Positions 7,725 to 25,900 of a stretch of 64,000 nucleotides of DNA are shown here, piece after piece. The stretch lies in sequence record PQ330092.1. The stretch is one strand, 5' to 3'. The notes below the pieces were generated by a model. That model was given only the letters and a program-made list of their open reading frames with translations. It was not told where the DNA came from and made no database searches. The position numbers and the translations under genes are program-made. The number at the start of each line of letters is the position of its first letter. Within the stretch, counting starts at the first letter, position 1.

Positions 7725-7744
7725 CCACCAGCACAAGCTGGTGG
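7725..7744. other. inverted pair of Chi sites CCACCAGC-acaa-GCTGGTGG
   Basis: Exact E. coli Chi octamer on both strands. Confidence 0.8.
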
Positions 7745-7942
7745 ATTCCCTCTAACAGTATTCAGTACTACATGATAGTCTTCATCCTCCTAGGGTAACA
7801 TAGTGAGGGCTATGATGGCAGTACTGAATACTCCCTTTCAAAAGATAGATCTATGGTATAGTACTGACGGATTTTGGGTGTAGTTACCCTGGATGGATTT
7901 TGGACGTAGATATGTCTAGCCCTCCAGAAGTCTGGAAGTAAA

Positions 7943-8056
7943 GATGGCTATCCATCTAGACGGCTAAACGGCTAGATTTCTGGATGGCTGGATGGCTAGA
8001 CGTTTGGACGGCTAAACGGCTAGATGGTTACACGTCTGGAAGTATAGACGGCTAAA
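7943..8056 (+). repeat. cluster of ~9 short repeats (G/A)A(C/T)GG(C/T)T(A/G)
   Basis: GACGGCTAAACGGCTAGA twice plus GATGGCT variants; non-coding. Confidence 0.75.
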
Positions 8057-8236
8057 TCAAAATTTTATTTTGTTTTTCCAATAGTTCCCCTACCGCGTGG
8101 GGATAGTTTCCCCGCAGTATCTGTAGTTAGATTTTTCTGAATCTGGAATCATTATCTTATAAACTGGGGGCAATGTCAACGACCTGGCCGGATATTTTTA
8201 AAAATTTTTTCAGTACTGAATTTTGGGCGTAACTAT

Positions 8237-8465
8237 GCACCCGGTGGGCTTGAGTCTTTCTCGACTTGATGGAACTATTATACAGTACTGGAAAAATAAA
8301 GCAATACCCTGGATGAAAAAAGTTTTAATTAATTTGCTTGCCATCCTGGGCCGGACTATGGTACTATATTTCAGTACTGAGAAAGTGCGTTTACCTGCTA
8401 GGGTGCGGGAGTGTATCCTTTTTTTATATCTTGAATTTTGGGCGTAATTCCGCACCCTCTGGGGT
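8237..8465. promoter_or_regulatory. three CCC-Ann-GGGTGC elements with minus-strand promoters
   Basis: Motifs at 8237-8250(-), 8393-8406(+, degenerate) and 8452-8465(-). Minus-strand TTGCTT-16-TATAAT and TTGACT-16-TATAAT upstream. Confidence 0.6.
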
Positions 8466-8671
8466 TTCCGCTTTCTCGCGTCTATGTAGTAATTATACGC
8501 TTTTTCAGGATCAAGTCAATACCTAAAAACAAAATAATTGAAAATAATTTAACGCGTTTAAACGGCCTGTAAAGCCCTGGAATGATTGGAATGGTGCAAA
8601 TGTATAGCTTATGTGTATTAATGCGTTAGAATGCGTCTGAGGCCGTTTTATGGGGTGTAGTAGTGATTTGG

Positions 8672-8764
8672 TTGATTCAGTACTGAATAATAGTACTCCT
8701 ATATAGAAAGATAGTTCCCCTGGATTGATTCAGTACTGAATAATAGTACTCCTATATAGAAAGA
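8672..8764 (+). repeat. 40-bp exact direct repeat (8672-8711, 8725-8764)
   Basis: TTGATTCAGTACTGAATAATAGTACTCCTATATAGAAAGA x2. Confidence 0.9.
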
Positions 8765-8795
8765 AAACTATTTTAAAAGTATTTGTAGAAAGTAC

Positions 8796-8856
8796 TTGCA
8801 CCGTACTGATAAAAGCGTATAATGTTTTACATCGAGAGCGGGAACACTTCCCGCTA
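8796..8856 (+). promoter_or_regulatory. prototype promoter/stem-loop cassette head (~45 promoters per DTR, many with the hairpin)
   Basis: AAAGTAC-TTGCAC-16-TATAAT-GTTTTAC-ATCGAGA-GCGGGAA-cac-TTCCCGC. Variants at 9256, 9936, 11299, 11554, 13622, 13959, 15544, 15774, 16360, 16795, 19524, 21105, 23650, 23955, 24503, 24839, 25479, 26347 and others (approximate positions). Confidence 0.9.
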
Positions 8857-8878
8857 CACATTAAGAGAGATTAAAACG

Positions 8879-9241
8879 ATGGCGACTCAAATCAATAAAA
8901 TCATGCTTAACCTGGTAAACTTCCGCGAAGAGATGAAAGGTCTTCCGGCTGAAACTGTAAAAATTCACATTGCAGCTTATCGGGAACTTATTGCAATGTT
9001 GCCGCTTAAGCGTGAACAATACGCCGCTACTTTGATGCTTGATTCAATGATCCATATAATGATCTCAAATGATTTAACGATGGTTTATCAGTACATGGGC
9101 GAAAATTTCGCGGTGTGTAGTAAGCCAGTACCAGGGATGGCAACTACTGAGGAATTGCACGGTTTAAATTTAAAGCAAGATGCATGGGATAATATGCCTC
9201 GTTTCCTGGTATGGGCTGACAGTGGCAAAATTTACAAATAA
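8879..9241 (+). CDS. hypothetical early protein
   Basis: Own promoter/hairpin; MATQINK start. Confidence 0.8.
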   Translation: MATQINKIMLNLVNFREEMKGLPAETVKIHIAAYRELIAMLPLKREQYAATLMLDSMIHIMISNDLTMVYQYMGENFAVCSKPVPGMATTEELHGLNLKQDAWDNMPRFLVWADSGKIYK

Positions 9242-9333
9242 GTTTAATAAAGTACTTGCAAACTAAGTTTAAAAGCGTATAATGTTTTACATCAGGTGGG
9301 GAATAGTTCCCCACTATATAAGAGGATTAAAAA

Positions 9334-9573
9334 ATGGCTAAATCAAAAATGTTCTTAGGTCACAAAAACAAAACTCATTGGAATGTAAGCCTTTGGATTA
9401 ATAACGATGAATCATTATACCGGTTGGCCCAGGACTTTATTAACGATAGCACTAATCGCAATGATGCGGCCCGTCATATGATGTTATTTTTAGAACAGAC
9501 TGGACAAGATAAAACACCGGACGGATTCAAATATAGCACTACTGCGATCCGTGCGGCGATGGTTGGAATGTAA
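9334..9573 (+). CDS. conserved phage hypothetical (WNVSLWINNDE...TPDG type)
   Basis: Own promoter, SD GAGGA; motif recalled from phage hypothetical proteins. Confidence 0.8.
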   Translation: MAKSKMFLGHKNKTHWNVSLWINNDESLYRLAQDFINDSTNRNDAARHMMLFLEQTGQDKTPDGFKYSTTAIRAAMVGM

Positions 9574-9661
9574 TAGAATAGAATTTATTTAAAGTACTAT
9601 TGCACGCTGATAGTACTTTATAATAGTGTTTTATTCATACACCAACGATAAGGGCAACAGC

Positions 9662-9928
9662 ATGAATATTAAGTATTTTGCGACGCGTGAACAAGCTCGG
9701 ATCGCCGCACGCCAGGACGGGGCAACGTTTAAAGATATGGGCGTACAATCGGAACGTGGTAAACGTTGGGCCATTGTAAAGCGTAGTACCGCCAGATCAT
9801 TACAGTACTGGTTAGCGGCCTTAAAAAGTCCCGATAGTGTATCGCGTCGAGTGGTAGAAATAAAGCTCGACCGAAAGGGCAACCGCGTGACCGTGTACCG
9901 TACTAAAAAGATTGCAGTACTTGAATAA
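9662..9928 (+). CDS. hypothetical basic protein; paralogue of 21607
   Basis: ATRExAR...FKDMG...RWA...RKGNRVTVY shared. Confidence 0.8.
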   Translation: MNIKYFATREQARIAARQDGATFKDMGVQSERGKRWAIVKRSTARSLQYWLAALKSPDSVSRRVVEIKLDRKGNRVTVYRTKKIAVLE

Positions 9929-10015
9929 AAAGTACTTGCAAACTATGTTTAAAGGCGTATAATGTTTTACATCGAGAGCGGGAACTCTTCCCGCCTATAA
10001 CCTGGAGTAATAAAA

Positions 10016-10246
10016 ATGACTAATATGTATATGACTGAAGTTAAAACCGTAAAAGATACTACCACGAATAAAACTACTTACTTACAGCGGATCTGTGGTG
10101 TATGGCAACGTATCAGCAAATCAAAGTACTTTAAATTAACATCATATGCCAATCGTTCGGATTCATTCAGTACTGAAATAAAAGGTAATAAAGTACACCA
10201 ATACGGCACTTATTATTATTATAGCCTGGACGCGATTGTAGTATAA
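10016..10246 (+). CDS. hypothetical early protein
   Basis: Own promoter/hairpin, SD GGAG. Confidence 0.8.
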   Translation: MTNMYMTEVKTVKDTTTNKTTYLQRICGVWQRISKSKYFKLTSYANRSDSFSTEIKGNKVHQYGTYYYYSLDAIVV

Positions 10247-10278
10247 GTAGTTTACAAATCTTTACAATTGCCAGTATT

Positions 10279-10450
10279 GACTTATTTTGTCAGTACTGGC
10301 ATAATGTATTCATTGGCAGATAAGCCGTAGCCCATAGGGTGCGGAAGTGTATCTATAGAAAAAGTAGTTTAGTACAGTTACAATTGTGCACCCGGTGGGT
10401 TAGCTGTTGTCATGGGGTATATTATACCAGTACTGGATAGTGCTGTCAAT
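10279..10450. promoter_or_regulatory. convergent pair of ORF-less promoter units with CCC-Ann-GGGTGC motifs
   Basis: + TTGACT-17-CATAAT leads to AGCCCATAGGGTGC (10329); minus TTGACA..TATAAT leads to AACCCACCGGGTGC (10388-10401). Confidence 0.7.
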
Positions 10451-10531
10451 ACTTTTTTTTTACTATTCAGTACTGAAAACTATTTTTAAAAAGTACTTGC
10501 AAACTATGTTTAAAGGCGTATAATGTTTTAC

Positions 10532-10606
10532 ATCAGGACGGGGAACGAAATAAGTAACTTCCCGTTAAGTAGCCCAGGAGTAAGGCACACGAAAAACTCC
10601 CCTGAT
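10532..10606 (+). ncRNA. candidate pseudoknot ncRNA, copy A
   Basis: Own promoter, no ORF. ATCAGG/CCTGAT closing stem; core TAAGTAGCCCAGGAGTAAGGCACACGAAAAACTCC. Confidence 0.7.
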
Positions 10607-10674
10607 AAAATAGTTTGACAAATGTTTTTAAAAGCGTATAATACTTACATCAACTACTGAATGAGGGTTACAAA

Positions 10675-11286
10675 ATGAAAACTATCACTACTACTACTTT
10701 CGTTATGGATTTTTCTGAATTGAACGCAGAACAAAAAACGTCAGCTATCGAACTGGTTCGGGAACGTGAAAAAAACTCAAACGACAATTATTTTTCTGAA
10801 AGTGAAATTGAATACTATAAAGAAACAGTACTACCGGAATATGGCATTAATGACGCTGAAATACAATTCAGTGGTTTTTGGTCCCAGGGTGACGGTGCAT
10901 CAATCAGTACTGACCACGTTGACGCAGTGAAGTTTTTACGCAAGGTAAGAGCATTAACTAAGTATCGCTCAATCCGTCACCTGCTGAATGAAGATGATTT
11001 GGCGATGAGTGTAAAGCGTTCGCACTCCCACTACTCGCATGAGAATACTGTAAGCGGGTACATTGAATCGGCTTACACTGATTTAACCGCAAAACAAGAA
11101 ACGTTAGTTAATGAGCTTGAGGAATTACTCACTGAAACTATTCGTGAATTGTCACGCAAGTTGTACCGTGATTTAGAGAATGCATATGAGGATCAATTCA
11201 CTACTGAAAACATTACGGCACTGATTGAGGGTAACGAGTATCAATTCAATGTTATTGATGGCGTAGTGGAATCAATCGAATATTAA
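10675..11286 (+). CDS. conserved phage hypothetical, acidic (FSGFWSQGDGAS motif)
   Basis: 203-aa ORF; own promoter TTGACA-16-TATAAT. Confidence 0.85.
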   Translation: MKTITTTTFVMDFSELNAEQKTSAIELVREREKNSNDNYFSESEIEYYKETVLPEYGINDAEIQFSGFWSQGDGASISTDHVDAVKFLRKVRALTKYRSIRHLLNEDDLAMSVKRSHSHYSHENTVSGYIESAYTDLTAKQETLVNELEELLTETIRELSRKLYRDLENAYEDQFTTENITALIEGNEYQFNVIDGVVESIEY

Positions 11287-11378
11287 TTTAAAAAGTACTT
11301 GCAAACTAAGTTTAAAAGCGTATAATACTTTATATCGAGAGCGGGAATAGTTCCCGCTACTAATGAGGAATACTACAA

Positions 11379-11543
11379 ATGAATACTTTTACCTTCGCTC
11401 AATTGAACGCCCTGGATGTATTGTCTGATGCTTTGCGGGATGCAACTGAAAGCGGTTTATTTGACAATGTTGACATTCACCCTGATGTAATTAATAATTT
11501 TTGTGATGCTATCGCAGAAGTACTGGAAGATCTAAAAAAATAA
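11379..11543 (+). CDS. hypothetical 54-aa acidic protein (below ORF-track cutoff)
   Basis: Own promoter/hairpin, SD GAGGA; MNTFTFAQLNALDVLSDAL. Confidence 0.75.
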   Translation: MNTFTFAQLNALDVLSDALRDATESGLFDNVDIHPDVINNFCDAIAEVLEDLKK

Positions 11544-11631
11544 TAGAAAGTACTTGCAATTAGTTTTTAGTACTGTATAATAGTTTACATAGAGGGGAGA
11601 AATGGTTCTCCCTGGTAATGAGGAAAATAAA

Positions 11632-11853
11632 ATGGCAAATATCACTACTCTTTCCCAACTGGAAGCACTGGTTAAATCTATGCGGGAACATGCCGACAAA
11701 ATCGGCGTACAAGATCCAGCCGTTTGCTTCTGCGACGAATTGAATGATGATACCCTGGTAATAGCAGAAGTCCAGGACGTTTCTAACTATTCCTCGCGTT
11801 ACACTGGCGGCGTAGCAAATAAAGGTGACTTCTGTTTATACCTTACAAAATAA
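11632..11853 (+). CDS. hypothetical early protein
   Basis: MANITT start after SD GAGGA. Confidence 0.8.
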   Translation: MANITTLSQLEALVKSMREHADKIGVQDPAVCFCDELNDDTLVIAEVQDVSNYSSRYTGGVANKGDFCLYLTK

Positions 11854-11919
11854 CAACGCGGGGAGATAATAACTCCCCGTTACTTTTTCAGTACTGAATC
11901 ATTTAATAGACGGATCTCG

Positions 11920-11990
11920 GCACCCGGTGGGTTAGTGACTGTTTCGTCTTGATGTAGTAATTATGCCAGTACTGGATGCACTTGTCAACA
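11920..11990 (-). promoter_or_regulatory. minus-strand ORF-less unit with AACCCACCGGGTGC
   Basis: Reverse complement TTGACA-17-CATAAT...CATCAAGACGAAACAGTCACTAACCCACCGGGTGC, near-identical to the + unit at 17893. Confidence 0.7.
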
Positions 11991-12095
11991 ACTATTTTTC
12001 AAATACTTTTTATTAAAATACTTGCTAATAGTTTTTAAACGCGTATAATGTTTTGCATAGGGGAGCGGTTCCCCTGGTAACTAAGGAATAAGAAA

Positions 12096-12332
12096 ATGCT
12101 TGAACAAATCAAATCAACGTCTGCTAATGTAACGGGAACGGTATCACACTTTATTGGTGATGAATCGCGGGGCGTTCCCTATTGTGCTGTACATGTAAAC
12201 ACTGAGGGTAACTACTGGTTTACGGTTTACGGATCATATTCATTTGGACGGCCAGGGCATCAAAAAATTCTGGATAAAGTACAGCCAACGGGTAAAAATA
12301 TCACGGCTGAAATGTTTTATAAAAAATCATAA
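12096..12332 (+). CDS. hypothetical early protein
   Basis: Own promoter/hairpin, SD AAGGA. Confidence 0.8.
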   Translation: MLEQIKSTSANVTGTVSHFIGDESRGVPYCAVHVNTEGNYWFTVYGSYSFGRPGHQKILDKVQPTGKNITAEMFYKKS

Positions 12333-12416
12333 AGTACTTGATAATAGTTTTTAGTACTGTATAATATTTTACATAGCACGGGGGAGCGGTTCCCCCTGGT
12401 AACTAAGGATAATCAA

Positions 12417-12716
12417 ATGAAAATTGCAATCATCGCCCTGGCTTTATCTGTTTCCTCTTTCGCTGTTAATGCGTCGTTAGATGTGAGTAGTGAAAAATTC
12501 ATTCAGTGCACTGTTGCGATGACCAATGAAAGTACGGGCGAGATTGTTTTAAAGGATTTAGAGATCCAGCCACAAGCATTTAAAAACGGGCCGTTCCATG
12601 AAGAAGACGAAAACGGTAGCACAACCATTTATTATGATGCAAGTACTAAGCGTGGATCGGTCACGGTTATGGATACAGAGAAAGTAACGCACACAGGAGT
12701 AATTAACTGTTTATAA
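12417..12716 (+). CDS. putative exported protein (signal peptide)
   Basis: MKIAIIALALSVSSFAVNA: basic-hydrophobic-AxA. Confidence 0.7.
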   Translation: MKIAIIALALSVSSFAVNASLDVSSEKFIQCTVAMTNESTGEIVLKDLEIQPQAFKNGPFHEEDENGSTTIYYDASTKRGSVTVMDTEKVTHTGVINCL

Positions 12717-12733
12717 TCTAGTACTGAATCACT

Positions 12734-12760
12734 AGCCCACCTTAAACAGTGGGCTTTTTT
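12734..12760 (+). terminator. rho-independent terminator
   Basis: AGCCCAC-cttaaaca-GTGGGCT-TTTTT; part of a 43-bp repeat. Confidence 0.85.
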
Positions 12761-12839
12761 GTTTTGTAGTACTGCATACTTTAAAAATAGTTTTAAAAAA
12801 GTAGTTGACATTACCACAAAAAGGCGTAGAATGTATTAC

Positions 12840-12901
12840 ATCAAGACGGGGAGCACTAAGTAGACCGCCAGTAAGTCGAACGAAAAACTGGACACGTCGA
12901 T
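12840..12901 (+). ncRNA. candidate pseudoknot RNA, copy C (leader of H-NS-like gene)
   Basis: Core TAAGTAGACCGCCAGTAAGTCGAACGAAAAACTGG with compensatory changes vs copies A/B. Confidence 0.65.
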
Positions 12902-12955
12902 AAAACTTTGATACACTAATAAACGTAAACTAAACTTTAATTGAGGATTTATAAA

Positions 12956-13438
12956 ATGGCTAATGTAAAATCATTCCTGAAAGCACTGATTTCAAACGAT
13001 ACTGTTATTGCTGCTGAATTGCTGGCTGAACTGGATAACGATACAATGAAAGCGGTACGCAACAATTTTAACATTGCGTACAGTGAAGCTAAAGAACTGC
13101 AAGCCAAAAAGGTAGCAGAACTGGAAGAACAGAAAAAAGCCCGTGAAGCAGAACTACAAGCAACAATCGAAAGTATCCAGGCGGCAGTAGTTGGATTGGA
13201 TCTGGAAGTGGTTGTAGAAATGGCACATAAAGCCCTGGCGGTTAAGTACGGTGAAGATAAGCCGGAATCTAAGCCTAAAAAATGGATTCAGGAACGCGTA
13301 GCGGTAGTACTGGACAACGGGGAAGAATATCTTATTCCGGTGCGTGGTAACTGCATTGCGGTAGTACTGGACGCTATCAAAGAAAGCGGTATGACTCGCG
13401 AGGAATGGATCGAAGCTCATCGCAAAGTTGAAGCATAA
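12956..13438 (+). CDS. H-NS-like protein (coiled coil + degenerate DNA-binding domain)
   Basis: C-terminus LDNGEEYLIPVRGNCIAVVLDAIKESGMTREEWI aligns by eye with E. coli H-NS [35 protein letters not shown]; central coiled coil. Confidence 0.55.
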   Translation: MANVKSFLKALISNDTVIAAELLAELDNDTMKAVRNNFNIAYSEAKELQAKKVAELEEQKKAREAELQATIESIQAAVVGLDLEVVVEMAHKALAVKYGEDKPESKPKKWIQERVAVVLDNGEEYLIPVRGNCIAVVLDAIKESGMTREEWIEAHRKVEA

Positions 13439-13459
13439 CAATTAAAGTACTGAATCACT

Positions 13460-13486
13460 AGCCCACCTTAAACAGTGGGCTTTTTT
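13460..13486 (+). terminator. rho-independent terminator (identical to 12734)
   Basis: Same hairpin + T-run. Confidence 0.85.
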
Positions 13487-13505
13487 GTGTCTGTAGTATT
13501 CCAGT

Positions 13506-13575
13506 CCACCAGCACCGCCTAGAATCGATTCTAACGCATTAAACTGATTATCTGATACATCGCCCTAGCTGGTGG
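13506..13575. other. Chi sites 13506-13513(-) and 13568-13575(+) around 14-bp palindrome TAGAATCGATTCTA
   Basis: Seen directly; intergenic. Confidence 0.75.
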
Positions 13576-13723
13576 CGTTAAGGTCGTTAGAATGCGATTG
13601 AGAGCGTTTAAAGTATTTTGCAAAAAGTAATAAAAAGTACTTGCACGATAAAGAGATTAGCGTATAATGTTTTACATCGAGAGGGGGAAACGGTTCTCCT
13701 TCCAAATCAAAGGAATCAAAACA

Positions 13724-13951
13724 ATGGCTATTATCATTACTCGCGTATCTGGTACTACTGGCAACGAACAAGTAGTTGCAGTCATTACTAACAAGGCAGG
13801 TGCGGAATTGCAAAATGCAATGAATACCTGGGCCGTTAATGAGTTCGGTCAGTGGGCAAGTGTAGCATACATTGAAACCTATCAAGTGCCGTCGATTAGT
13901 TTAACTGATTTGGGCGTTGAGCGTATCCTTTGCCTGGATGAATTAAATTAA
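13724..13951 (+). CDS. hypothetical early protein
   Basis: MAIIITRV start after SD AAGGA. Confidence 0.8.
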   Translation: MAIIITRVSGTTGNEQVVAVITNKAGAELQNAMNTWAVNEFGQWASVAYIETYQVPSISLTDLGVERILCLDELN

Positions 13952-14036
13952 AAAAGTACTTGCAAAGTAAATCGAATAAAGTATAATACATTACATCAAG
14001 GGGAGAAATGATTCTCCCCACTACAAGGAAACTAAA

Positions 14037-14249
14037 ATGGCTATCATTACTAAAATCAAAGTTAACAAGACTATCGTTAAACTGGCAGAAGTGAAAGAAG
14101 GTTATAAAGTATCTTGGTGCGGTATGTATCGGACGTTCGCAGATATAGATGATGCGATCAATTATTACAGTGACACGGTTAAAAACTTTGTTCGTGCTGA
14201 TGTGGTTATGGCAGTGGCAACATATAAAGCAGCGAAAGAAAGTAAGTAA
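14037..14249 (+). CDS. hypothetical early protein; weak similarity to 17173
   Basis: Own promoter/hairpin. Confidence 0.8.
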   Translation: MAIITKIKVNKTIVKLAEVKEGYKVSWCGMYRTFADIDDAINYYSDTVKNFVRADVVMAVATYKAAKESK

Positions 14250-14340
14250 AAATATTATCACAGTACTATTGACATAGTTTGATAGTACTGGCATAATAGA
14301 TTTTATCAAGACGACACATATTAATTTAAGGAATACTAAA

Positions 14341-14664
14341 ATGGCTAAAACTATCATCAACACCGTTTCCCTGGCTGCAATCCATGCAATCAATGTTGAC
14401 GGTAAACGTTGGACTGATTCATATGGCAATACTTATCATTCTTGTCATGTAAGCGTTGAACTGGATAACGGCTTGAATGATCTGGCGGTTGAATCATTTA
14501 CTTATGGCTATGAGGATGCATATCAACAAACGGCGGTATCACTCTTAAAGGAATCAGTAGACGGGCTTGATACTGTTGAAACCTCCCTCTATCGTTTGTG
14601 CAATGATCTTAATATCCCGTTGCATTGTACTGTACAGGATGTAAAACGTAAAAAAGATCTTTAA
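14341..14664 (+). CDS. hypothetical; paralogue of 21188
   Basis: RWTD..GNTYHSC...FTYGY...DVKRKKD shared. Confidence 0.85.
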   Translation: MAKTIINTVSLAAIHAINVDGKRWTDSYGNTYHSCHVSVELDNGLNDLAVESFTYGYEDAYQQTAVSLLKESVDGLDTVETSLYRLCNDLNIPLHCTVQDVKRKKDL

Positions 14665-15014: not shown

Positions 15015-15065
15015 TCAAAACATCGTTAGCGGTCGATTCAGGCCGCTTATATTGGGGATTATACC

Positions 15066-18899: not shown

Positions 18900-18977
18900 T
18901 ACTTGCATTTAGTTTTCAGTACTGTTATAGTACTTGCATCAAGGGGAAACATCTTCCCCTACTAAGAGGAAATAAAA

Positions 18978-19166: not shown

Positions 19167-19193
19167 TATTAATTTAATAGAGGATAACAATAA

Positions 19194-19517
19194 ATGTACA
19201 TTCATACTACTATCACAAAGGAAGTCCGTTGCCAGTTCGAAAGTATTCCGGGCGTATGTTTCATCACTGGTACGTTTTCCCCTGGTGATCGTGATAATCC
19301 AGTACTGTTACAATTACGCCATCCATCATGGGATAAAGCATTTGATCTACCGTTGAATGAATTCGCAACTACTGCTGAAAAGTACATTAAAAATATTCGC
19401 GAGAATGATCGACTATTCATTAATGCTTTTAGTGATGCCGCGTTAAGTGAGATCCATGCTGTATTGGTTGCAATCATGGAATCAATGGAGAAAACTATAT
19501 TCAAACAAGGTGAATAA
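19194..19517 (+). CDS. hypothetical early protein
   Basis: SD GAGGA. Confidence 0.8.
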   Translation: MYIHTTITKEVRCQFESIPGVCFITGTFSPGDRDNPVLLQLRHPSWDKAFDLPLNEFATTAEKYIKNIRENDRLFINAFSDAALSEIHAVLVAIMESMEKTIFKQGE

Positions 19518-19600
19518 AAACTATTGACAATGCAATCTAGTACTGTATAATAAGTTACATGAAGGGGAGAAATGATTCTCCCCACTGAGAGGAAAGAAAA

Positions 19601-19813
19601 ATGCAAGGTCAACTAATCGTTCGTAAATGGTCTGATACTAACGAAAAACCGTGGGATGTACAATACATCGGACCGGATGGGGTATCACGTTATCAGCCTG
19701 GCGTAACGCATAGTACTGAGCAATATGCCGCCGCTCACCGCGAACGCCTGTTAGAATCCATGAAACAGGGATTCTGTGAAAAATTCATTCAAGATCATTG
19801 GCTGAAAGATTAA
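19601..19813 (+). CDS. hypothetical early protein
   Basis: Own promoter/hairpin. Confidence 0.8.
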   Translation: MQGQLIVRKWSDTNEKPWDVQYIGPDGVSRYQPGVTHSTEQYAAAHRERLLESMKQGFCEKFIQDHWLKD

Positions 19814-19830
19814 TAGAAGGAGTACAGCTT

Positions 19831-19923
19831 ATGCAAATGAATCCGATGATTATTGTTTTAGCTGTACTTATGATCATTCATGCAATTGTAGAAGTATTAA
19901 CGCAATCAGGAGTAATAAAATGA
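19831..19923 (+). CDS. 30-aa membrane peptide
   Basis: SD AAGGAG; MQMNPMIIVLAVLMIIHAIVEVL. Confidence 0.6.
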   Translation: MQMNPMIIVLAVLMIIHAIVEVLTQSGVIK

Positions 19924-20093
19924 TTCAAGTAGAATTATCAGTACTGAAAGATCTGTTTTATCGGATTGGTACTACTGGCGAATATCCGAAGGGTGATAAT
20001 GCAAAACTTTACGTATCACTCGACTTATGGCAACGCGAACAATTAGCAACGTCCTGGCGTAAAGGTAAAGCAGATAGCGAGGTGAAAGCATGA
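19920..20093 (+). CDS. hypothetical 57 aa (below cutoff)
   Basis: SD AGGAG, ATGA overlap; MIQVELSVLKDLFY. Confidence 0.7.
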   Translation: MIQVELSVLKDLFYRIGTTGEYPKGDNAKLYVSLDLWQREQLATSWRKGKADSEVKA

Positions 20094-20239
20094 AAGAATT
20101 CTTATTCGAAGTAGTGTTTCAAGGTGTCGGTAGTAACCAACTGATTCGCTCAAGTGGTTACAATGTTAACCAGGCATGGAATAACATTAAACAAATGTAC
20201 CCGAACGCTATCACCTATCGCAACCCGAAAGAAGTTTAA
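20090..20239 (+). CDS. hypothetical 49 aa (below cutoff)
   Basis: SD GAGGT, ATGA overlap; MKEFLFEVVFQG. Confidence 0.7.
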   Translation: MKEFLFEVVFQGVGSNQLIRSSGYNVNQAWNNIKQMYPNAITYRNPKEV

Positions 20240-20249
20240 AAAGAATTGA

Positions 20250-20346
20250 AAAAGGGATTGACTCCGGTCAGTCCCTTTGCTATTATATACGCATAGAAAC
20301 AAATCAGCCCACAGGGTGCATAAATGTATCTATTGTTAGCTGGTGG
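20250..20346 (+). promoter_or_regulatory. terminator-promoter fusion, CCC-ACA-GGGTGC unit (20306-20319) and Chi (20339-20346)
   Basis: AAAGGGATTGAC-TCCG-GTCAGTCCCTTT overlaps TTGACT-17-TATTAT. Confidence 0.75.
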
Positions 20347-20412
20347 CTAGTACTGAAAACTATTTTTAAAAAAGTACTTGCATTGTACTTAGAATCAAGT
20401 ATAATGTTTTAC

Positions 20413-20485
20413 ATCAGGACGGGGAACAAAACAAGTAACCCCGTTAAGTAGTCCAGGAGTAAGACATACGAAAACCTCCCCTGAT
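20413..20485 (+). ncRNA. candidate pseudoknot ncRNA, copy B
   Basis: Own promoter, no ORF; core TAAGTAGTCCAGGAGTAAGACATACGAAAACCTCC. Confidence 0.7.
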
Positions 20486-20554
20486 AAAAAAGATTGACAA
20501 TAGTTTGAAGTACTGATAAAATAATCACATCAACTACTGATAAGGTAATACAAA

Positions 20555-20755
20555 ATGAAACAATTCACTTTCGGCGTAGTAGGTTTCCCAGTATCTAACG
20601 GTGTTTACAATTCAGAACGCGGTGCAAAAAATGCAGCAAGCCGGGCGTATGGTAGTCAGCGTGATCTCCAAGTAGGTTATATCAGTACTATTAGTAACAT
20701 GTTTATTCCAGTATCTCAGCGTAAAGCTGGTAGCATGAAATGGGAAACTATCTAA
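20555..20755 (+). CDS. hypothetical early protein
   Basis: Own promoter. Confidence 0.8.
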   Translation: MKQFTFGVVGFPVSNGVYNSERGAKNAASRAYGSQRDLQVGYISTISNMFIPVSQRKAGSMKWETI

Positions 20756-20824
20756 TAAAATAGATTGACAAAGTATCTTAGTACTGTATAATACTTACAT
20801 CAACCACTGATAAGGAAACATAAA

Positions 20825-21100
20825 ATGCGGATTCTACTGACAGCTAACGAAATCGAGCAAGTACTGACTACTAACCTGGAAGACTGGAAACGTGAAGCAG
20901 ATATCCAGGCGGTTCAATGGCTTAACGATAAGTTAACGCCGGATGACTTAAGCAAGATTGTAGATCCTCAATTCTACGAAGATATCCACGACACCGCGTT
21001 AAGCGTCGAGGATGTACTTGATAAGCATTTTATTGATATTGATTTGCAGGTTTACGGTCGTAAAAACTTTATCACTATTCACGACATTTACAATAATTAA
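20825..21100 (+). CDS. hypothetical acidic protein
   Basis: Own promoter, SD AAGGA. Confidence 0.8.
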   Translation: MRILLTANEIEQVLTTNLEDWKREADIQAVQWLNDKLTPDDLSKIVDPQFYEDIHDTALSVEDVLDKHFIDIDLQVYGRKNFITIHDIYNN

Positions 21101-21187
21101 GTATTGACAAAGTATCTTAGTACTGTATAATAGTTTACATCAAGCGAGGGGAATGGTTCCCCTCCTAACAAAGAGAGAGAAATAAAA

Positions 21188-21511
21188 ATGACTATGATCC
21201 TTACCCAGAAAGTAGAACTGAAAATTGTAACCTCCTTTGACATTAAAGTTAATCGCTGGACTGATCGGAACGGTAACACTTACCACTCTTGCTACGTGTC
21301 CGCGTTAATTGGCGACCGCTGGGAAGACCTGGGACATGAAACCTTTACTTACGGTTACGGTACACAAGGCGAATACACGGGCTTGGAGATCATTAAAGAA
21401 ACCGTTATAGGTTTCAACCCGAAAGAAAAAGTTATTCACCGCATCGAGGAAGAGATCAACAAAGAAATAACAGTTCGCTACCACGATGTAAAACGTAAGA
21501 AAGACATGTAA
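21188..21511 (+). CDS. hypothetical; paralogue of 14341
   Basis: RWTDRNGNTYHSC...FTYGY...DVKRKKDM. Confidence 0.85.
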   Translation: MTMILTQKVELKIVTSFDIKVNRWTDRNGNTYHSCYVSALIGDRWEDLGHETFTYGYGTQGEYTGLEIIKETVIGFNPKEKVIHRIEEEINKEITVRYHDVKRKKDM

Positions 21512-21606
21512 TAGAATCCATTTAAAGTACTATTTGACATTGCCCAGATAGTACTTTATAATAGACTCTAACTTGTAGTACTAACTTAACTAATAGGATG
21601 TATACC

Positions 21607-22002
21607 ATGATTACTAAATTCTACGCTACCCGTGAAGCTGCCCGTATTGTTGCACGCGAGGAAGGCGAAACATTTAAAGACATGGGCAAAGATGCACCGA
21701 AAGGTCAACGCTGGGCCGTACAGTTCAAAGAGATCTCTGATATTGTGAATTCACCGGAGCCAGTACTAACAGCAGCAGAACTAAAACGAGCGGATTTACT
21801 GGCGTCAATACTTGATGCACAAGATGAGTTTATCGCTGATTCTGATATCAAAGTACAGACAAACCATACCGCATGGACTCACGCGGATCACCTGGCAAAC
21901 CTTAAGCGTCCAAGTGAACTGATTCGCAACCAGAAAGAGATCCGACACGACCGTAAGGGTAATCGTGTAACAGTATACAGTAAACGCCGCCAGGTTATCT
22001 AA
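21607..22002 (+). CDS. hypothetical; paralogue of 9662 with a longer middle
   Basis: ATREAAR...FKDMG...DRKGNRVTVY. Confidence 0.8.
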   Translation: MITKFYATREAARIVAREEGETFKDMGKDAPKGQRWAVQFKEISDIVNSPEPVLTAAELKRADLLASILDAQDEFIADSDIKVQTNHTAWTHADHLANLKRPSELIRNQKEIRHDRKGNRVTVYSKRRQVI

Positions 22003-22063
22003 TAACTTGCAGTACTAACAACACGGCGGGATCAGTTCCCGCCTTTTTTATAGGACAAACAAA

Positions 22064-22318
22064 ATGATTAAGGTTCAACTATATAAAGATAACATCTTAC
22101 GGGTACACTATAAAGCACCTCAGAGAATCATCACAAAGGCCGTACAGCTTGCTAATGAGTTTATTAATGGTAACCTATTACCTAGGAAGTTAAGCAACGG
22201 GAAACTGCGTGTAATCGATGTAGACACTAACAACAGAATAGTAATAGAGAACACAGGAAAGATAAACCTTTATGAGCATCAACAATACAATAAGAAAATA
22301 AAACTAATATCACGTTGA
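22064..22318 (+). CDS. hypothetical basic protein
   Basis: SD AGGA. Confidence 0.75.
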   Translation: MIKVQLYKDNILRVHYKAPQRIITKAVQLANEFINGNLLPRKLSNGKLRVIDVDTNNRIVIENTGKINLYEHQQYNKKIKLISR

Positions 22319-22371
22319 CAGTACTCAATTGTTTTAGTACTATGTACACATACCAACACGGGAGAAACAAA

Positions 22372-22590
22372 ATGAAATTATCTAAAATCGAAAAGAAAAC
22401 TATTGATGAAGCAGTTAAGCACGGTTATACCTTTCGTAATGATTCACATTTTACCAATTTTCAACAAGGGTATCGTACTATTAAAAAACTAATTGACAAA
22501 GGTTTATTAGTTGAAGTCAATAACGGTAACGGTATCGAGTATCAACCAACACAAGACGCATTTTATTTTAAGAAATATAATATTATCTAA
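22372..22590 (+). CDS. hypothetical, possible winged-helix
   Basis: YRTIKKLIDKGLLVEV resembles a wHTH recognition helix/wing; weak. Confidence 0.6.
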   Translation: MKLSKIEKKTIDEAVKHGYTFRNDSHFTNFQQGYRTIKKLIDKGLLVEVNNGNGIEYQPTQDAFYFKKYNII

Positions 22591-22648
22591 TTGACAGTAC
22601 TCAAATGTTTTAGTACTATATGTACATACCAACACGGGGAAAAACAAA

Positions 22649-22891
22649 ATGATTACTTTAGAAAAACGTATCAAAGAAACTACATCGCTGGTGGAATTGT
22701 TAACAGTACTGAAATGTAAAACTACTCGGTTTAGTACACCGGACTTTATTAATATGGTTGATGTTAACGGTCGTTATCGTATTGCAGTAGAACAAGGCAC
22801 GGCAAAAGTATTCAGTACTAAAAACACTAAGGAAGTGATTCACGCGGTTAGTGTAAAAAAAGTAGTTGCCATTGATAGTAAAGTACTGTAA
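22649..22891 (+). CDS. hypothetical early protein (contains Chi 22687-22694)
   Basis: Own promoter. Confidence 0.75.
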   Translation: MITLEKRIKETTSLVELLTVLKCKTTRFSTPDFINMVDVNGRYRIAVEQGTAKVFSTKNTKEVIHAVSVKKVVAIDSKVL

Positions 22892-22922
22892 TATAGTTTC
22901 ATTAACTCAAGGAGAACATGCA

Positions 22923-23507
22923 ATGCGTAATTATACTAAATTCATCCGTACACTGTCAGAAATGGAAACCAACAAAGAGATCCTTTCAGCTTGTCGGTTA
23001 GCTGGTCTGGAGATCATCGGGGCAGGTTCTTCCCGTATAGTTTTCGCTTTAAATGATCGGTTAGTGATCAAGGTCGCGAATTGTGATGCGGGTGTAGAAC
23101 AAAATGAAACAGAATGTAGGGTATGGAATTTTTTAGACTATGACCGCCCTCAGTTGAAACAGTTCTTCGCTAAAGTGCATATGCATTTAAGCGATCCTGA
23201 TAATATGTTTATTGTTATGGATCGGTTGAGTACTGCAAGTAAAGGCAGTGTAAAGCACGTTAACGCGTGCAATGAATTAAAGTACAATATTAAACGTAAT
23301 GCCATTGAACGCCAGCACCGCTTTGCTGATGCACTACAACACGTTGATGATACATTATCAACACTAACGATAAGAGATATCAGAAAACAGAATATCGGCC
23401 AGGATCGCAACGGCCTTATTAAAGTACTTGATTACGGTTTAACCCGCAATATCTGGAATCAGTACTATAAAAAGCGTGATGTAAAAGCCGTAACTATAAC
23501 ACGATAA
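22923..23507 (+). CDS. protein kinase-like (phage Ser/Thr kinase, T7 gp0.7-type fold)
   Basis: Gly loop IGAGSSRIVF, VIK lysine, helix-C E (QNETE), catalytic DIRKQN, DYG; SD AAGGAG. Confidence 0.8.
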   Translation: MRNYTKFIRTLSEMETNKEILSACRLAGLEIIGAGSSRIVFALNDRLVIKVANCDAGVEQNETECRVWNFLDYDRPQLKQFFAKVHMHLSDPDNMFIVMDRLSTASKGSVKHVNACNELKYNIKRNAIERQHRFADALQHVDDTLSTLTIRDIRKQNIGQDRNGLIKVLDYGLTRNIWNQYYKKRDVKAVTITR

Positions 23508-23519
23508 AAAAAGATTAAA

Positions 23520-23608
23520 AAAGGGATTGACTCCGGTCAGTCCCTTTGCTATTATATATTCATTGAGAGATAACTCACTGACCCATAGGGTGCGGAAGTG
23601 TATCTATT
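23520..23608 (+). promoter_or_regulatory. terminator-promoter fusion and CCC-ATA-GGGTGC unit (23580-23593)
   Basis: Same block as 20250 and 25780. Confidence 0.75.
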
Positions 23609-23729
23609 ATATAAGTATTCAGTACTGAAAACTATTTGATAAAAAGTACTTGCATTGTACTTAGAATCAAGTATAATGTTTTATATCGAGAGGGGGAAAC
23701 GGTTCTCCCTGGCAATAAGGAATAAAATC

Positions 23730-23951
23730 ATGACTACAATGACTTGCATTTACGCTTCCAATCTTCTGAATGATGCGGCCTTTAATGTTGATTCAGAATA
23801 TCAATGTTATCGGGATGAAAATAAAAAAGTTTTTGTAGTTGATAATAATGGTTTCCATATTGAATTACAATCCGGCTTCACTGGTGTTGATGGTAAATCA
23901 GTATGGGGCGTACAGGATGATAAAGGCACATATCATTTTAAACGTAATTAA
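23730..23951 (+). CDS. hypothetical early protein
   Basis: MTTMTC after SD AAGGA. Confidence 0.8.
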   Translation: MTTMTCIYASNLLNDAAFNVDSEYQCYRDENKKVFVVDNNGFHIELQSGFTGVDGKSVWGVQDDKGTYHFKRN

Positions 23952-24035
23952 GTATTGACAAAGTATATTAGTACTGTATAATAGTTTACATCAAGGGGAG
24001 AATAGTTCTCCCCGATACTAAAAGGAAACAAAATT

Positions 24036-24308
24036 ATGTCCAGCTACTCCGCTACTATGATCATTAAAGATATGAACGGTAATCCTACTTCTGCTGGTGG
24101 ATCATTTGGAAACATTAATTTAGATGGTCGGTTATCCATGCAATCAGCCATCGATGCAGCGAAAGAAGTTTTTAAGAATGAATGTACTGTTAGTAAGCTG
24201 GATTATATGGGATTCGCTATCGAAAAAACTAATCGTTTTGTGAACTACAAAAAACCATTGATGATTGATACTAACCTGAAAGCTAACGAAGTGGAGTACT
24301 TATTATGA
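24036..24308 (+). CDS. hypothetical early protein (contains Chi 24093-24100)
   Basis: Own promoter/hairpin. Confidence 0.8.
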   Translation: MSSYSATMIIKDMNGNPTSAGGSFGNINLDGRLSMQSAIDAAKEVFKNECTVSKLDYMGFAIEKTNRFVNYKKPLMIDTNLKANEVEYLL

Positions 24309-24496
24309 CAGTTGAAGAAGTTAAAAAAGTACTGGCAGTACTACGCTATCATAATCATTGCAAGGTGAAGAATGATCCTGATTATCTCGATTCATCCCTG
24401 GAAGAGGATACACTACAAGCAATAAGCCATATGCAAAAAATGCTTAAGCGTATGACTGAAAAGAATAGACCGGACTATATCGGAAATAAAATTTAA
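24305..24496 (+). CDS. hypothetical
   Basis: SD GGAG, ATGA overlap. Confidence 0.75.
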   Translation: MTVEEVKKVLAVLRYHNHCKVKNDPDYLDSSLEEDTLQAISHMQKMLKRMTEKNRPDYIGNKI

Positions 24497-24582
24497 AAAG
24501 TACTTGCATTGTAGTTAGATTAACGTATAATGTTTTACATAGAGCGGGGGAATAGTTCTCCCGCCAGTCCAGGAGATACACC

Positions 24583-24846
24583 ATGAACACTATCGAAATC
24601 ACTATCAATGCACACGTATACGACAACGTAGTACTGCAAACTACTATGACCGCTAATGATACCAGTACTTTGCGGAATACTGTTATTAGTGCCGTATGTG
24701 CTGCAATCGGTGATGTCGCCCTGGAAAATGCAAAACACGTAAACGATGGTTTCACTATGTGCAAACGTGATAACGCAAAACATATCATCGTAGAAGGTTA
24801 CGGCGGTGTAGAATATAATGTTTATATGAAAAAAGTACTTGCATAA
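24583..24846 (+). CDS. hypothetical early protein
   Basis: Own promoter/hairpin, SD AGGAG. Confidence 0.8.
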   Translation: MNTIEITINAHVYDNVVLQTTMTANDTSTLRNTVISAVCAAIGDVALENAKHVNDGFTMCKRDNAKHIIVEGYGGVEYNVYMKKVLA

Positions 24847-24913
24847 TAACTAAAACAAAGTATAATGTTTTGCATAGGGGGAGATATCCTCCCCCACTAA
24901 AAGGAGTAATAAA

Positions 24914-25138
24914 ATGGCTAACTTTGATGAACTGATGCGGGAAGTAGCTAACCTGGCAGAAGAGAAGAAATCATTCGATTCTATCTATAACACCGCTCAC
25001 CGTGATTCAGTACTGGCATGTAACCAGGATCAAAAAGATGAACTAATCGCCACCTATCATGAAGCATGGAAGTACTACCGACAATGGGAGAAAGAAGAAA
25101 GAGAGTCTACCATTGACGGCCTCAATAATCTAATCTAA
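24914..25138 (+). CDS. hypothetical helical protein
   Basis: Own promoter/hairpin, SD AAGGAG. Confidence 0.8.
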   Translation: MANFDELMREVANLAEEKKSFDSIYNTAHRDSVLACNQDQKDELIATYHEAWKYYRQWEKEERESTIDGLNNLI

Positions 25139-25214
25139 AAGTTTTATTTCAGTACTATTGACATAGCTTGATAGTACTGATGTAATAACTTTACTAACTA
25201 CAAGGGGAAACATA

Positions 25215-25472
25215 ATGGAACAGTTCACACAATATCGGGTAAATCCTCAAGCGATGGCCTACGTAGAAGACCATAAAACGTTACCAGTACTAACACCAAT
25301 TAAAGGCCATATCTATCGTGCAATGTCGTGGTGTACGGCCCAGGATGGCTATAAAACCGTAGCCGTTGGTATGTATTGCGGTAATGGTGAATGGTTTGAT
25401 CCAAATAATCCGGTAGCCATTGACAGTACTGAAAAAATGAAATGGGCCGACTACATCGAAGATATTTCATAA
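25215..25472 (+). CDS. hypothetical early protein
   Basis: Own promoter. Confidence 0.8.
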   Translation: MEQFTQYRVNPQAMAYVEDHKTLPVLTPIKGHIYRAMSWCTAQDGYKTVAVGMYCGNGEWFDPNNPVAIDSTEKMKWADYIEDIS

Positions 25473-25561
25473 AACTATTTGACAGTACTAACCAGTAATG
25501 TATAATGTTTTACATAGAGCGGGGGAATAGTTCTCCCGCCAATAGTTTGGAGTAAAATATT

Positions 25562-25762
25562 ATGTCTATCGCTCTCGCCCTGGTTGAAGTACTGAAAGAA
25601 GCTAAAGCCAACCTTATCGATGTACAGATTAAGGAATTGCAAAACGGCTTAATCGGCTGTACTTGTACCGCTGGCGGTGCGGCAGACTATCGAGAACACG
25701 AATCACTCGAATCACTGGTTCGGTATCTTACCATGATCGTTGATGATTGGAGAATCATCTAA
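25562..25762 (+). CDS. hypothetical early protein
   Basis: Own promoter/hairpin, SD GGAG. Confidence 0.8.
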   Translation: MSIALALVEVLKEAKANLIDVQIKELQNGLIGCTCTAGGAADYREHESLESLVRYLTMIVDDWRII

Positions 25763-25779
25763 CAAAAAAGAATAAAAAA

Positions 25780-25900
25780 AGGGATTGACTCCGGTCAGTC
25801 CCTTTGCTATTATATACGCATAGACAAAAACTAGCCCACAGGGTGCATAGGTGTATCTAAAATATATAGTTAATAACGGTGAGTAACTATCTGCTGGTGG
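25780..25900 (+). promoter_or_regulatory. terminator-promoter fusion, CCC-ACA-GGGTGC unit (25833-25846) and Chi (25893-25900)
   Basis: Same block as 20250 and 23520. Confidence 0.75.

Follow-up and report, generated by a model that had tools for sequence, protein, structure and literature searches.

Results

A cluster of Chi octamers in the terminal repeat of phage JP4

The window analyzed here is a 64,000-nucleotide stretch of sequence record PQ330092.1, the genome of Escherichia phage JP4 (Asteriusvirus), a 121Q-like jumbo phage. It contains two perfect tandem copies of a 20,114-bp direct terminal repeat (DTR), which appear side by side because the public record is permuted (record length 370,741 = 330,513 + 2 x 20,114). 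The repeat begins at exactly the base where the records of vB_Ec-M-J (annotated DTR 1-21525), E9.1 and fEgEco12 begin, and its last bases match the end of the vB_Ec-M-J DTR. The fEgEco12 DTR was found by PhageTerm and confirmed by restriction digests, and that of Sharanji is supported by PhageTerm. The proposal of the sequence-only reading that this block is a terminal repeat is therefore supported, although the physical ends of JP4 itself are inferred from these relatives and from assembled contigs. The features of the region, with Chi being the host DNA-repair signal GCTGGTGG (read as CCACCAGC when it lies on the bottom strand), are as follows.

7148-27261 (+), DTR copy 1 (20,114 bp), an early-gene region with about 60 small + strand genes and at least 24 near-consensus sigma-70 promoters
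27262-47375 (+), DTR copy 2, identical to copy 1
7725-7732 (-), Chi, 578 bp from the left end, where it would be active for RecBCD entering at that end; left half of a perfect palindrome with 7737-7744; conserved in all 5 other Asteriusvirus genomes compared
7737-7744 (+), Chi, right half of the palindrome
13506-13513 (-), Chi, intergenic, 6.36 kb from the left end and the second site that would be active against left-end entry; conserved in 4 of 5 relatives, with 121Q having CCGTCAGC
13568-13575 (+), Chi, separated by 54 nt from the (-) site at 13506-13513, with flanks that are not palindromic
17608-17615 (+), Chi, intergenic, inside an imperfect hairpin
19071-19078 (+), Chi, inside a 62-aa gene (frame GCT GGT GG)
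20339-20346 (+), Chi, intergenic, about 30 nt upstream of an early promoter
22687-22694 (+), Chi, inside an 80-aa gene (frame G CTG GTG G)
24093-24100 (+), Chi, inside a 90-aa gene; the CBB and GAP32 orthologues read GCTTGCGG at this position
25670-25677 (+), GCTGGCGG, a one-base-off relic whose orthologous position is an exact Chi in vB_Ec-M-J, E9.1 and fEgEco12
25893-25900 (+), Chi, intergenic, ending 1,361 bp from the right end and the first site that RecBCD entering there would meet
27839-46014, the same ten Chi sites in copy 2, at 27839 (-), 27851 (+), 33620 (-), 33682 (+), and 37722, 39185, 40453, 42801, 44207 and 46007 (all +)

The observation made from the sequence alone holds, and is stronger than first described. 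All ten positions listed in that reading are exact Chi octamers (8 on + and 2 on -), and because the block recurs exactly 20,114 bp further on, the window holds 20 sites in total. Both inverted pairs noted in that reading are real, with 7725/7737 forming a perfect 8-bp palindrome with a 4-nt spacer. Its statement that seven sites are intergenic holds against + strand genes, although two of the seven fall in 30-39-aa minus-strand ORF calls that look spurious. The claim that the first sites met from the left and right ends lie about 580 bp and 1.4 kb in and are both in the active orientation is likewise correct.

Chi is enriched in the repeat and not in the rest of the genome

Dinucleotide shuffles of the window gave 0.64 +/- 0.87 sites, with a maximum of 5, against the 20 observed. 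Markov models of order 0-4 fitted to one repeat copy predicted 0.17-0.40 sites against 10 observed, roughly a 30-fold excess, so the earlier rough estimate of about 0.2 per 20 kb was right. The claim that no sites lie outside the repeat is true only of the window, where the 23.8 kb of unique sequence has none. A genome-wide count against Markov models, a check proposed along with the original observation, showed that the 330.5 kb of unique DNA in the record has 14 sites (7 on each strand) against 8-12 expected at orders 3-6, and so is not enriched. Chi density is 11.7 times higher in the repeat than in unique DNA (binomial p = 3.6e-7).

The excess is specific for the exact octamer. Its 24 one-mismatch variants total 5 observed against 8.6 expected, and Chi ranks first among all 168 octamers of the same base composition in JP4, vB_Ec-M-J, CBB, GAP32 and RaK2, with 9-11 copies against a mean of 0.1-0.3. 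Among octamers over-represented in the repeat, Chi comes next after the AGTACT palindrome and the early-promoter words. We found no indication that it is a by-product of another element: the sites share no flanks and so are not part of a larger repeat, they do not coincide with scanned terminators, and the repeat has no match to E. coli DNA. Moreover, 7 of the 10 sites lie outside + strand genes although only 31% of the repeat is non-coding (p = 0.012).

Conservation and recurrence in other phage lineages

Across the 5 other Asteriusvirus repeats compared, 49 of 50 site-by-genome comparisons are conserved, and only 2 of 80 octamer columns vary, against 239 of 1,658 flank columns (Fisher p = 5e-4), as expected of purifying selection. 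Three other Rak2-like genera carry clusters of 6-9 sites. In Mimasvirus, CBB has 9 sites in its annotated 22.5-kb repeat, a 6.7-fold excess (p = 5e-5), and GAP32 has 9. In Alcyoneusvirus, RaK2 and K64-1 each have 9 sites in about 14 kb, and in Eneladusvirus, fHe-Yen9-03 has 6 in 8 kb whereas BF has 6 in 11 kb, which is marginal. No JP4 site has an orthologous Chi in CBB, GAP32 or RaK2. The first site from the left end is (-) and the last from the right is (+) in JP4, its relatives, and CBB and GAP32.

A parallel was found in an unrelated phage family with a different host. In Staphylococcus phage K, all 40 copies of the S. aureus Chi, GAAGCGG, lie in the two 8.5-kb terminal repeats (20 in each) and none in the 131 kb between them, while in Twort 15 of 15 and in Romulus 8 of 9 copies lie in the region homologous to that repeat. 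As in JP4, these repeats carry early genes and include hairpin pairs like that at 7725/7737. The family (Herelleviridae, Twortvirinae), the host enzyme (AddAB) and the Chi word all differ, the density is higher (1 per 0.42 kb in K), and the orientation is mixed (13:7 in K). We found no published description of this pattern, so it is a parallel identified here rather than an established family.

Anti-RecBCD and recombination functions

T4 gp2 (a DNA end protector), lambda Gam, Mu Gam and T7 gp5.9 are proteins that block or inhibit RecBCD and so keep it from destroying an injected linear genome, whereas the device proposed here for the same problem is a DNA signal that would re-program the enzyme. 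Searches with the PHROG families for these four (phrog_429, 259, 9014 and 491), which did not extend to P22 Abc2, returned nothing at E <= 1 in JP4, CBB or RaK2, genomes in which most genes are unannotated. JP4 does encode a RecA/UvsX-like ORF of 389 aa at 363.1-364.0 kb of the record, and UvsX, gp46/47 and UvsW are reported in CBB and a recombinase A in Sharanji. The DNA of fEgEco12 cuts as predicted in silico, and is therefore probably not heavily modified.

Discussion

Our analysis indicates that the 20-kb repeat of JP4 is a Chi island kept by selection. RecBCD is switched by Chi when it approaches from the 3' side of the octamer, and with the repeat boundaries taken as the physical ends, the two (-) sites face the left end and all eight (+) sites face the right end. 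We suspect that when the linear genome enters the cell, host RecBCD loads on a blunt end and degrades inwards, meeting eight correctly oriented sites from the right, the first after 1.4 kb, or two from the left, at 0.58 and 6.4 kb. At Chi, the enzyme would stop destroying the 3'-ended strand and load RecA on it. Because that tail is still inside the repeat, it would be homologous to the repeat at the other end of the same molecule or of a sister molecule, and strand invasion could then circularize or concatenate the genome and prime replication, all before the phage's own T4-like recombination proteins are made.

What the sequences establish is the enrichment, its restriction to the exact octamer, its orientation, its conservation and its recurrence in other lineages; that these octamers act as functional Chi sites, that RecBCD acts on these ends, that growth depends on recA and recBC, and that the outcome is recombination between repeats are inferences, and a literature search found no host-mutant data for any Asteriusvirus. 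We consider this scenario only somewhat more likely than not. The phage's own RecA/UvsX-like gene, together with gp46/47 and UvsW in relatives, may make host recombination dispensable. The 8:2 strand asymmetry leaves the left end with a predicted capture of only about 50-65%, assuming 30-40% recognition per site, and the (+) half of the palindrome near that end would protect almost nothing. In addition, an unrecognized RecBCD inhibitor or end binder among several hundred unannotated small proteins would make Chi at the ends irrelevant early in infection.

The interpretation offered by the sequence-only reading is thus partly supported. Selection for Chi oriented to meet RecBCD from each end is supported by sequence evidence, and recombination of the repeats by RecBCD and RecA, which it raised as a possibility, is the most likely function but remains inferred. 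Its suggestion that the phage disguises its ends as self is the weakest part, since Subramaniam and Smith argue that Chi is not a self marker because Chi-bearing phages kill E. coli normally.

Other explanations are also consistent with parts of the data, although we regard each as unlikely. The array may serve for protection only, acting as a brake on degradation of the early-gene region until phage functions take over, with recombination left to the phage's own UvsX and gp46/47 system. The value of keeping a repeat with so many strong host-type promoters intact and the failure to find gp2, Gam or gp5.9 homologues in the families searched fit this view. However, after Chi, RecBCD still unwinds and degrades the 5'-ended strand, so duplex early genes beyond Chi are not simply preserved. 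The confinement of Chi to the repeated DNA, the only part with a homologous partner, is better explained by recombination, to which P1 genetics also point. Slightly less likely is a late-stage role, in which the array protects, or makes recombinogenic, the free ends produced by rolling-circle replication or by terminase cuts at concatemer junctions, much as lambda Chi is active only in one orientation relative to cos. The (+) bias (8:2 in JP4, and 7:2, 8:1 and 6:0 in the other genera) fits one dominant direction of RecBCD entry, and lambda and LLS show packaging-linked orientation. Nevertheless, an unknown inhibitor or host shut-off may have removed RecBCD by this stage, phage K has a mixed orientation, and the idea does not explain why the left-most site is (-) in the two lineages whose repeat ends are known, Asteriusvirus and Mimasvirus.

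More doubtful still is that the sites serve mainly to limit CRISPR spacer acquisition, or as self camouflage, by shortening the tract that RecBCD or AddAB turns into spacer substrates. Free ends are acquisition hotspots bounded by Chi, and spacers from a Thermus phage came mainly from its terminal repeat. This would, however, be a side effect of the same RecBCD switch rather than a separate mechanism, the same pattern occurs in phages of S. aureus, a host that rarely carries CRISPR, and the E. coli type I-E system is usually silent. Least likely is that the octamer signals to something other than RecBCD, such as a phage DNA-binding protein or an RNA element, or that the excess is compositional. 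Two sites do form a perfect hairpin downstream of a promoter, and other short motifs such as AGTACT are strongly over-represented in this genome. Against this, sites occur in both coding and non-coding DNA without shared flanks, composition and k-mer models fail by 25-50 fold while one-mismatch variants are not enriched, and an unrelated phage family shows the same pattern with a word that is exactly its own host's Chi.

The closest precedent is phage P1 (and P7 and D6), for which a Chi-dense terminal redundancy, proposed to be used for RecBCD/RecA cyclization, has been described (Subramaniam and Smith, bioRxiv 10.1101/2021.07.08.451572; Genome Res 2025, PMC12315714). P1 has 50 Chi sites in 94.8 kb (0.53 per kb), similar to the 10 in 20.1 kb found here (0.50 per kb), and both densities are more than twice that of E. 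coli (1 per 4.6 kb, or 0.22 per kb). In both phages the sites are concentrated in the DNA repeated at the two ends of the packaged molecule, both orientations are present, and the sites are not preferentially in ORFs. P1, however, is temperate, is packaged by headful so that its ends are spread over 20-40 kb from pac, and also has Cre-lox, whereas JP4 is a virulent 350-kb myovirus with a fixed, exact repeat full of early genes, only background Chi in its unique DNA, and a T4-like UvsX. The requirement of P1 for recA and recBC to form plaques is shown genetically, while any such dependence in JP4 is by analogy. Abundant (1 per 1.86 kb), orientation-biased and unevenly placed Chi has also been interpreted as selection to use host RecBCD in a class of phages where it accompanies the absence of a phage recombinase and of anti-RecBCD functions. 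JP4 has a recombinase, so the rule of lambdoid phages that those without a Rec module have many Chi sites does not apply, and its enrichment is confined to the terminal repeat. The T5 terminal repeat (first-step-transfer DNA) is also long, exact and home to the earliest genes, and has 5 times the Chi density of the unique part (2 sites per 10.2 kb against 4 in 101 kb), but there are only two sites, both (+), and the excess is not significant on its own (p = 0.10).

The sharing of this trait by related and unrelated large phages suggests that they use the host's end-degrading enzyme to save and join their own DNA ends. Four Rak2-like genera of Enterobacterales carry GCTGGTGG and three Twortvirinae genera of Staphylococcus carry GAAGCGG. 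If this broader reading is correct, which we put forward only tentatively, these phages depend on the host RecBCD or AddAB enzyme to process their genome ends, and the over-represented GC-rich word in a phage's terminal repeat could then be used to read off the unknown Chi sequence of its host.

Genome layout and the terminal repeat

The window matches Escherichia phage JP4 (PQ330092.1, 370,741 bp, host E. coli O157:H7) at 100% identity, with window position 1 corresponding to record position 115,645. JP4 is a 121Q/PBECO4-like jumbo myovirus of the genus Asteriusvirus, part of the "Rak2-like" group. Its main landmarks, in window coordinates, are as follows.

2093-6884: left unique flank, a long array of back-to-back 60-80-aa genes on the + strand, with a negative GC skew although it is coded on the + strand
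7148-27261: first copy of a 20,114-bp segment
27262-47375: second, perfect tandem copy of the same segment
27180-27275: right end of the repeat and the junction between the copies
47376-63000: right unique flank, also a long array of back-to-back 60-80-aa genes on the + strand

Several lines of evidence show that the 20,114-bp segment is the direct terminal repeat (DTR), written twice side by side in a permuted record. Its first base is base 1 of the records of vB_Ec-M-J (annotated "Direct Terminal Repeats" 1-21525), E9.1 and fEgEco12, and its last bases match the end of the vB_Ec-M-J repeat. The 20,993-bp repeat of fEgEco12 was found by PhageTerm and confirmed by restriction digests, and the 20,668-bp repeat of Sharanji was found by PhageTerm; the termini of JP4 itself are inferred here from those of its relatives. 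Because the record is permuted, the two end copies lie in tandem in the middle of the sequence, a layout that cannot exist in a packaged genome or in a concatemer junction, and the annotation is duplicated accordingly. The right boundary of the repeat is conserved between genera: JP4 and vB_Ec-M-J end in ...GGGTAACCT, Pectobacterium phage CBB ends in ...CAGTAACGCT, and in all three TAGCGA follows within one base of the boundary, with a shared TAGGTAATCCCTT about 80 nt upstream. This may be the terminase cut signal. The end motif shared by JP4 and CBB was absent from the stretch of Klebsiella phage RaK2 that we examined, and only a Chi cluster is therefore claimed for RaK2.

Chi sites are concentrated in the repeat

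The observation made in the sequence-only reading, that Chi octamers crowd the repeat and are missing from the unique part of the window, held. All ten of the positions it listed are exact Chi octamers, and the same ten recur 20,114 bp further on to give 20 in the window, whereas shuffles of the window give 0.64. One copy of the repeat has 8 sites on the + strand and 2 on the - strand, and Markov models of order 0-4 predict 0.17-0.40 in total. The 23.8 kb of unique sequence in the window has none. Genome-wide, the 330.5 kb of unique DNA has 14 sites (7+, 7-) against 8-12 expected at orders 3-6, and it is therefore neither enriched nor depleted; these genome-wide counts include the 55 nucleotides at window 63037-63091, in which no Chi lies. 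Three of the 14, at PQ330092.1 110814, 111072 and 111327, just left of the window, are spaced about 255 bp apart on the minus strand just upstream of genes annotated as regulator of chromosome condensation, and are probably copies within a coding repeat rather than selected Chi sites. Density in the repeat is 11.7 times that of unique DNA (p = 3.6e-7). At 0.50 per kb, it is more than twice the E. coli density and about equal to that of phage P1.

The enrichment is specific to the exact octamer

We tested whether the excess of Chi might be a side effect of something else, and each of five alternatives failed. Base composition or k-mer bias does not account for it: among all 168 octamers with the base composition of Chi, Chi ranks first in the repeats of JP4, vB_Ec-M-J, CBB and Cronobacter phage GAP32 and in the RaK2 cluster, with 9-11 copies against a mean of 0.1-0.3 and a maximum of 2-5. 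A relaxed motif is likewise ruled out, since the 24 one-mismatch variants together occur 5 times against 8.6 expected. The sites are not part of a larger repeat, as they share no flanks and none of the repeat families in the DTR (the early promoters, their leader hairpins and a 95-nt module) contains Chi. Neither terminators nor known RNAs explain the sites: no scanned terminator overlaps a Chi site, only 7725/7737 and 17608 lie in hairpins, and a search of Rfam found nothing in the repeat at E <= 0.1. Finally, the repeat is not host-derived, because megablast found no match to it in 5,426 E. coli genomes. Seven of the ten sites lie outside + strand genes although only 31% of the repeat is non-coding (p = 0.012).

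After the AGTACT palindrome and the promoter words, Chi is the next most over-represented octamer in the repeat. AGTACT is the most frequent hexamer of the whole JP4 genome, with 915 copies against 349 expected, and within the window it is densest at 7148-47375. CAGTACTG occurs 191 times against 24 expected and TCAGTACTGA 48 times against 2.7, and the word often sits in the spacer of early promoters. The other sequence elements found in the repeat are listed here in window coordinates.

7513-7540: perfect sigma-70 promoter
7894-8053 (and 28008-28167): about 14 tandem 8-bp units of the form RRAYGGCT, 0.75-0.9 kb from the left end of the repeat and downstream of the promoter at 7513-7540, in a stretch with no convincing ORF; they look like iterons, a packaging site or a non-coding RNA
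8786-26421: about 24 copies of an early-promoter cassette consisting of AAAGTACTTGCA, a 16-17-nt spacer and TATAATGTTTTACAT, followed by a leader hairpin (GGGGAGAAA...TTCTCCCC) and a ribosome-binding site
16231-16258, 20251-20278, 23520-23547 and 25778-25805: a 95-nt module with a promoter-like TTGACT...TATTAT buried in a 12-bp-stem hairpin; pieces of it are among the few DNA stretches shared with the repeats of RaK2, GAP32 and CBB

Conservation within the genus and recurrence in other genera

Within Asteriusvirus the sites are orthologous and under selection. Across the repeats of vB_Ec-M-J, E9.1, fEgEco12, BF17 and 121Q, 49 of 50 site-by-genome comparisons keep the exact octamer, while the flanks are 80-100% identical. 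In multiple alignments, 2 of 80 octamer columns vary against 239 of 1,658 flank columns (Fisher p = 5e-4). There is also turnover: JP4 has GCTGGCGG at 25670, where three relatives have Chi, and fEgEco12 and 121Q each have a private extra site.

Each Rak2-like genus examined has a cluster of sites, mostly on the strand of early transcription.

Table. Chi clusters in other Rak2-like genera (genus; phage; cluster; statistic)
Mimasvirus; Pectobacterium phage CBB; 9 sites (7+, 2-) in its annotated 22,456-bp repeat, 20 in 333 kb outside; p = 5e-5
Mimasvirus; Cronobacter phage GAP32; 9 sites (7+, 2-) in the homologous region; scan p = 2e-5
Alcyoneusvirus; Klebsiella phages RaK2 and K64-1; 9 sites (8+, 1-) in about 14 kb; scan p < 2e-5
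Eneladusvirus; Yersinia phage fHe-Yen9-03; 6 (+) sites in 8 kb; scan p = 3e-4
Eneladusvirus; Serratia phage BF; 6 (+) sites in 11 kb; scan p = 0.04, marginal

Inheritance of one ancestral set of sites is rejected between genera. At the DNA level, the JP4 repeat shares only short intergenic modules with the repeat regions of CBB, GAP32 and RaK2, and no JP4 Chi has an orthologous Chi in those three phages. Where a gene is shared, JP4 reads GCTGGTGG and CBB and GAP32 read GCTTGCGG. The number and orientation of sites are therefore maintained while the positions are not.

A parallel in Staphylococcus phages

An unrelated family shows the same pattern with a different word. Staphylococcus phage K (Herelleviridae) has an annotated 8,486-bp terminal repeat (KF766114.1 1-8486 and 139832-148317), and all 40 copies of the S. 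aureus Chi, GAAGCGG, lie in the two repeat copies. That is 20 per copy (13+, 7-), with none in the 131 kb between them, against an expectation per repeat of 0.15-0.4. The word ranks first of 105 same-composition heptamers, its flanks are diverse, and two pairs form hairpins like 7725/7737 in JP4. In phage Twort (NC_007021.1 88424-96009) 15 of 15 copies, and in Romulus (NC_020877.1 100833-105530) 8 of 9, lie in a 5-8-kb stretch homologous to the K repeat. T5 shows the same direction only weakly, with 2 sites per 10.2-kb repeat against 4 in 101 kb. Both T5 repeat sites (NC_005859.1 8127 and 8689, and again at 119658 and 120220) are (+) and lie near the inner end of the repeat, and these 2 of 6 non-redundant sites amount to a 5-fold excess that is not significant alone. 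We found no paper describing Chi in the terminal repeats of Rak2-like or Twort-like phages in a literature search that did not cover most subscription journals.

Orientation of the sites

RecBCD recognizes Chi on the strand that ends 3' at the entry point. Taking the repeat boundaries as the physical ends, the two (-) sites, 578 bp and 6.36 kb in, face the left end, and all eight (+) sites face the right end. The nearest of these ends 1,361 bp in, and six of them lie in the outer 9.7 kb on that side. The left-most site is (-) and the right-most is (+) in every Asteriusvirus checked and in CBB and GAP32, which is suggestive but rests on few independent lineages. If each site is recognized 30-40% of the time, in line with published values, eight sites would capture 94-98% of enzymes and two would capture 51-64%.

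A possible role for Chi in the repeat

We propose that RecBCD enters at a genome end and is switched by Chi while still inside the repeat. It would then load RecA on a 3' tail that has a homologous partner only because the DNA is repeated at the other end, and strand invasion would circularize or concatenate the genome and could prime replication. This is the model put forward for P1. In line with it, no homologue of T4 gp2, lambda Gam, T7 gp5.9 or Mu Gam was found in JP4, CBB or RaK2. The repeat is also the earliest-expressed DNA, with at least 24 near-consensus sigma-70 promoters, and the DNA of a close relative cuts normally with restriction enzymes. Weighing against the model, the phage has its own UvsX-like recombinase, and relatives have gp46/47 and UvsW. 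Several hundred small proteins are unannotated, and the ten largest encoded in the repeat include no known nuclease inhibitor; they match only families of unknown function, apart from one DksA-like protein, one acetyltransferase and a weak secondary DNA-ligase match.

Our analysis establishes that the feature is real, specific and selected, whereas its function, including any action of RecBCD and RecA on these ends, is inferred from sequence alone. We are highly confident that RecBCD recognition is what selection acts on, but only somewhat more inclined toward than against the recombination model itself. The interpretation in the sequence-only reading, that the phage disguises its ends as self and may use RecBCD and RecA to recombine its repeats, is supported in part, the disguise being its weakest element. 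Other possibilities are that Chi affords protection without recombination, that it has a late role at replication or packaging ends, or that it limits CRISPR adaptation. A target other than RecBCD is made unlikely by the staphylococcal parallel, which uses a different word that is exactly that host's Chi.

The closest known case is the Chi-dense terminal redundancy of P1. JP4 differs from it in that JP4 is virulent, has a fixed exact repeat of early genes, has only background Chi in its unique DNA, and has its own recombinase. Because a recombinase is present, JP4 does not fit the "no Rec module, high Chi" class of lambdoid phages.

A Chi island confined to the repeat gives a concrete and readily testable hypothesis for how the giant linear genomes of Rak2-like phages survive RecBCD in the first minutes of infection, and for how exact terminal repeats are turned into circles or concatemers. 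The idea was so far argued mainly for temperate P1 and some lambdoid phages, and our finding extends it to virulent jumbo phages used in therapy studies. The most interesting reading is a possible general rule, in which the long terminal repeats of large virulent phages carry host-matched Chi islands. The parallel in staphylococcal Twort-like phages, with their own host's Chi, suggests such a rule, and it also suggests a way to predict Chi sequences, or hosts, from phage genomes.
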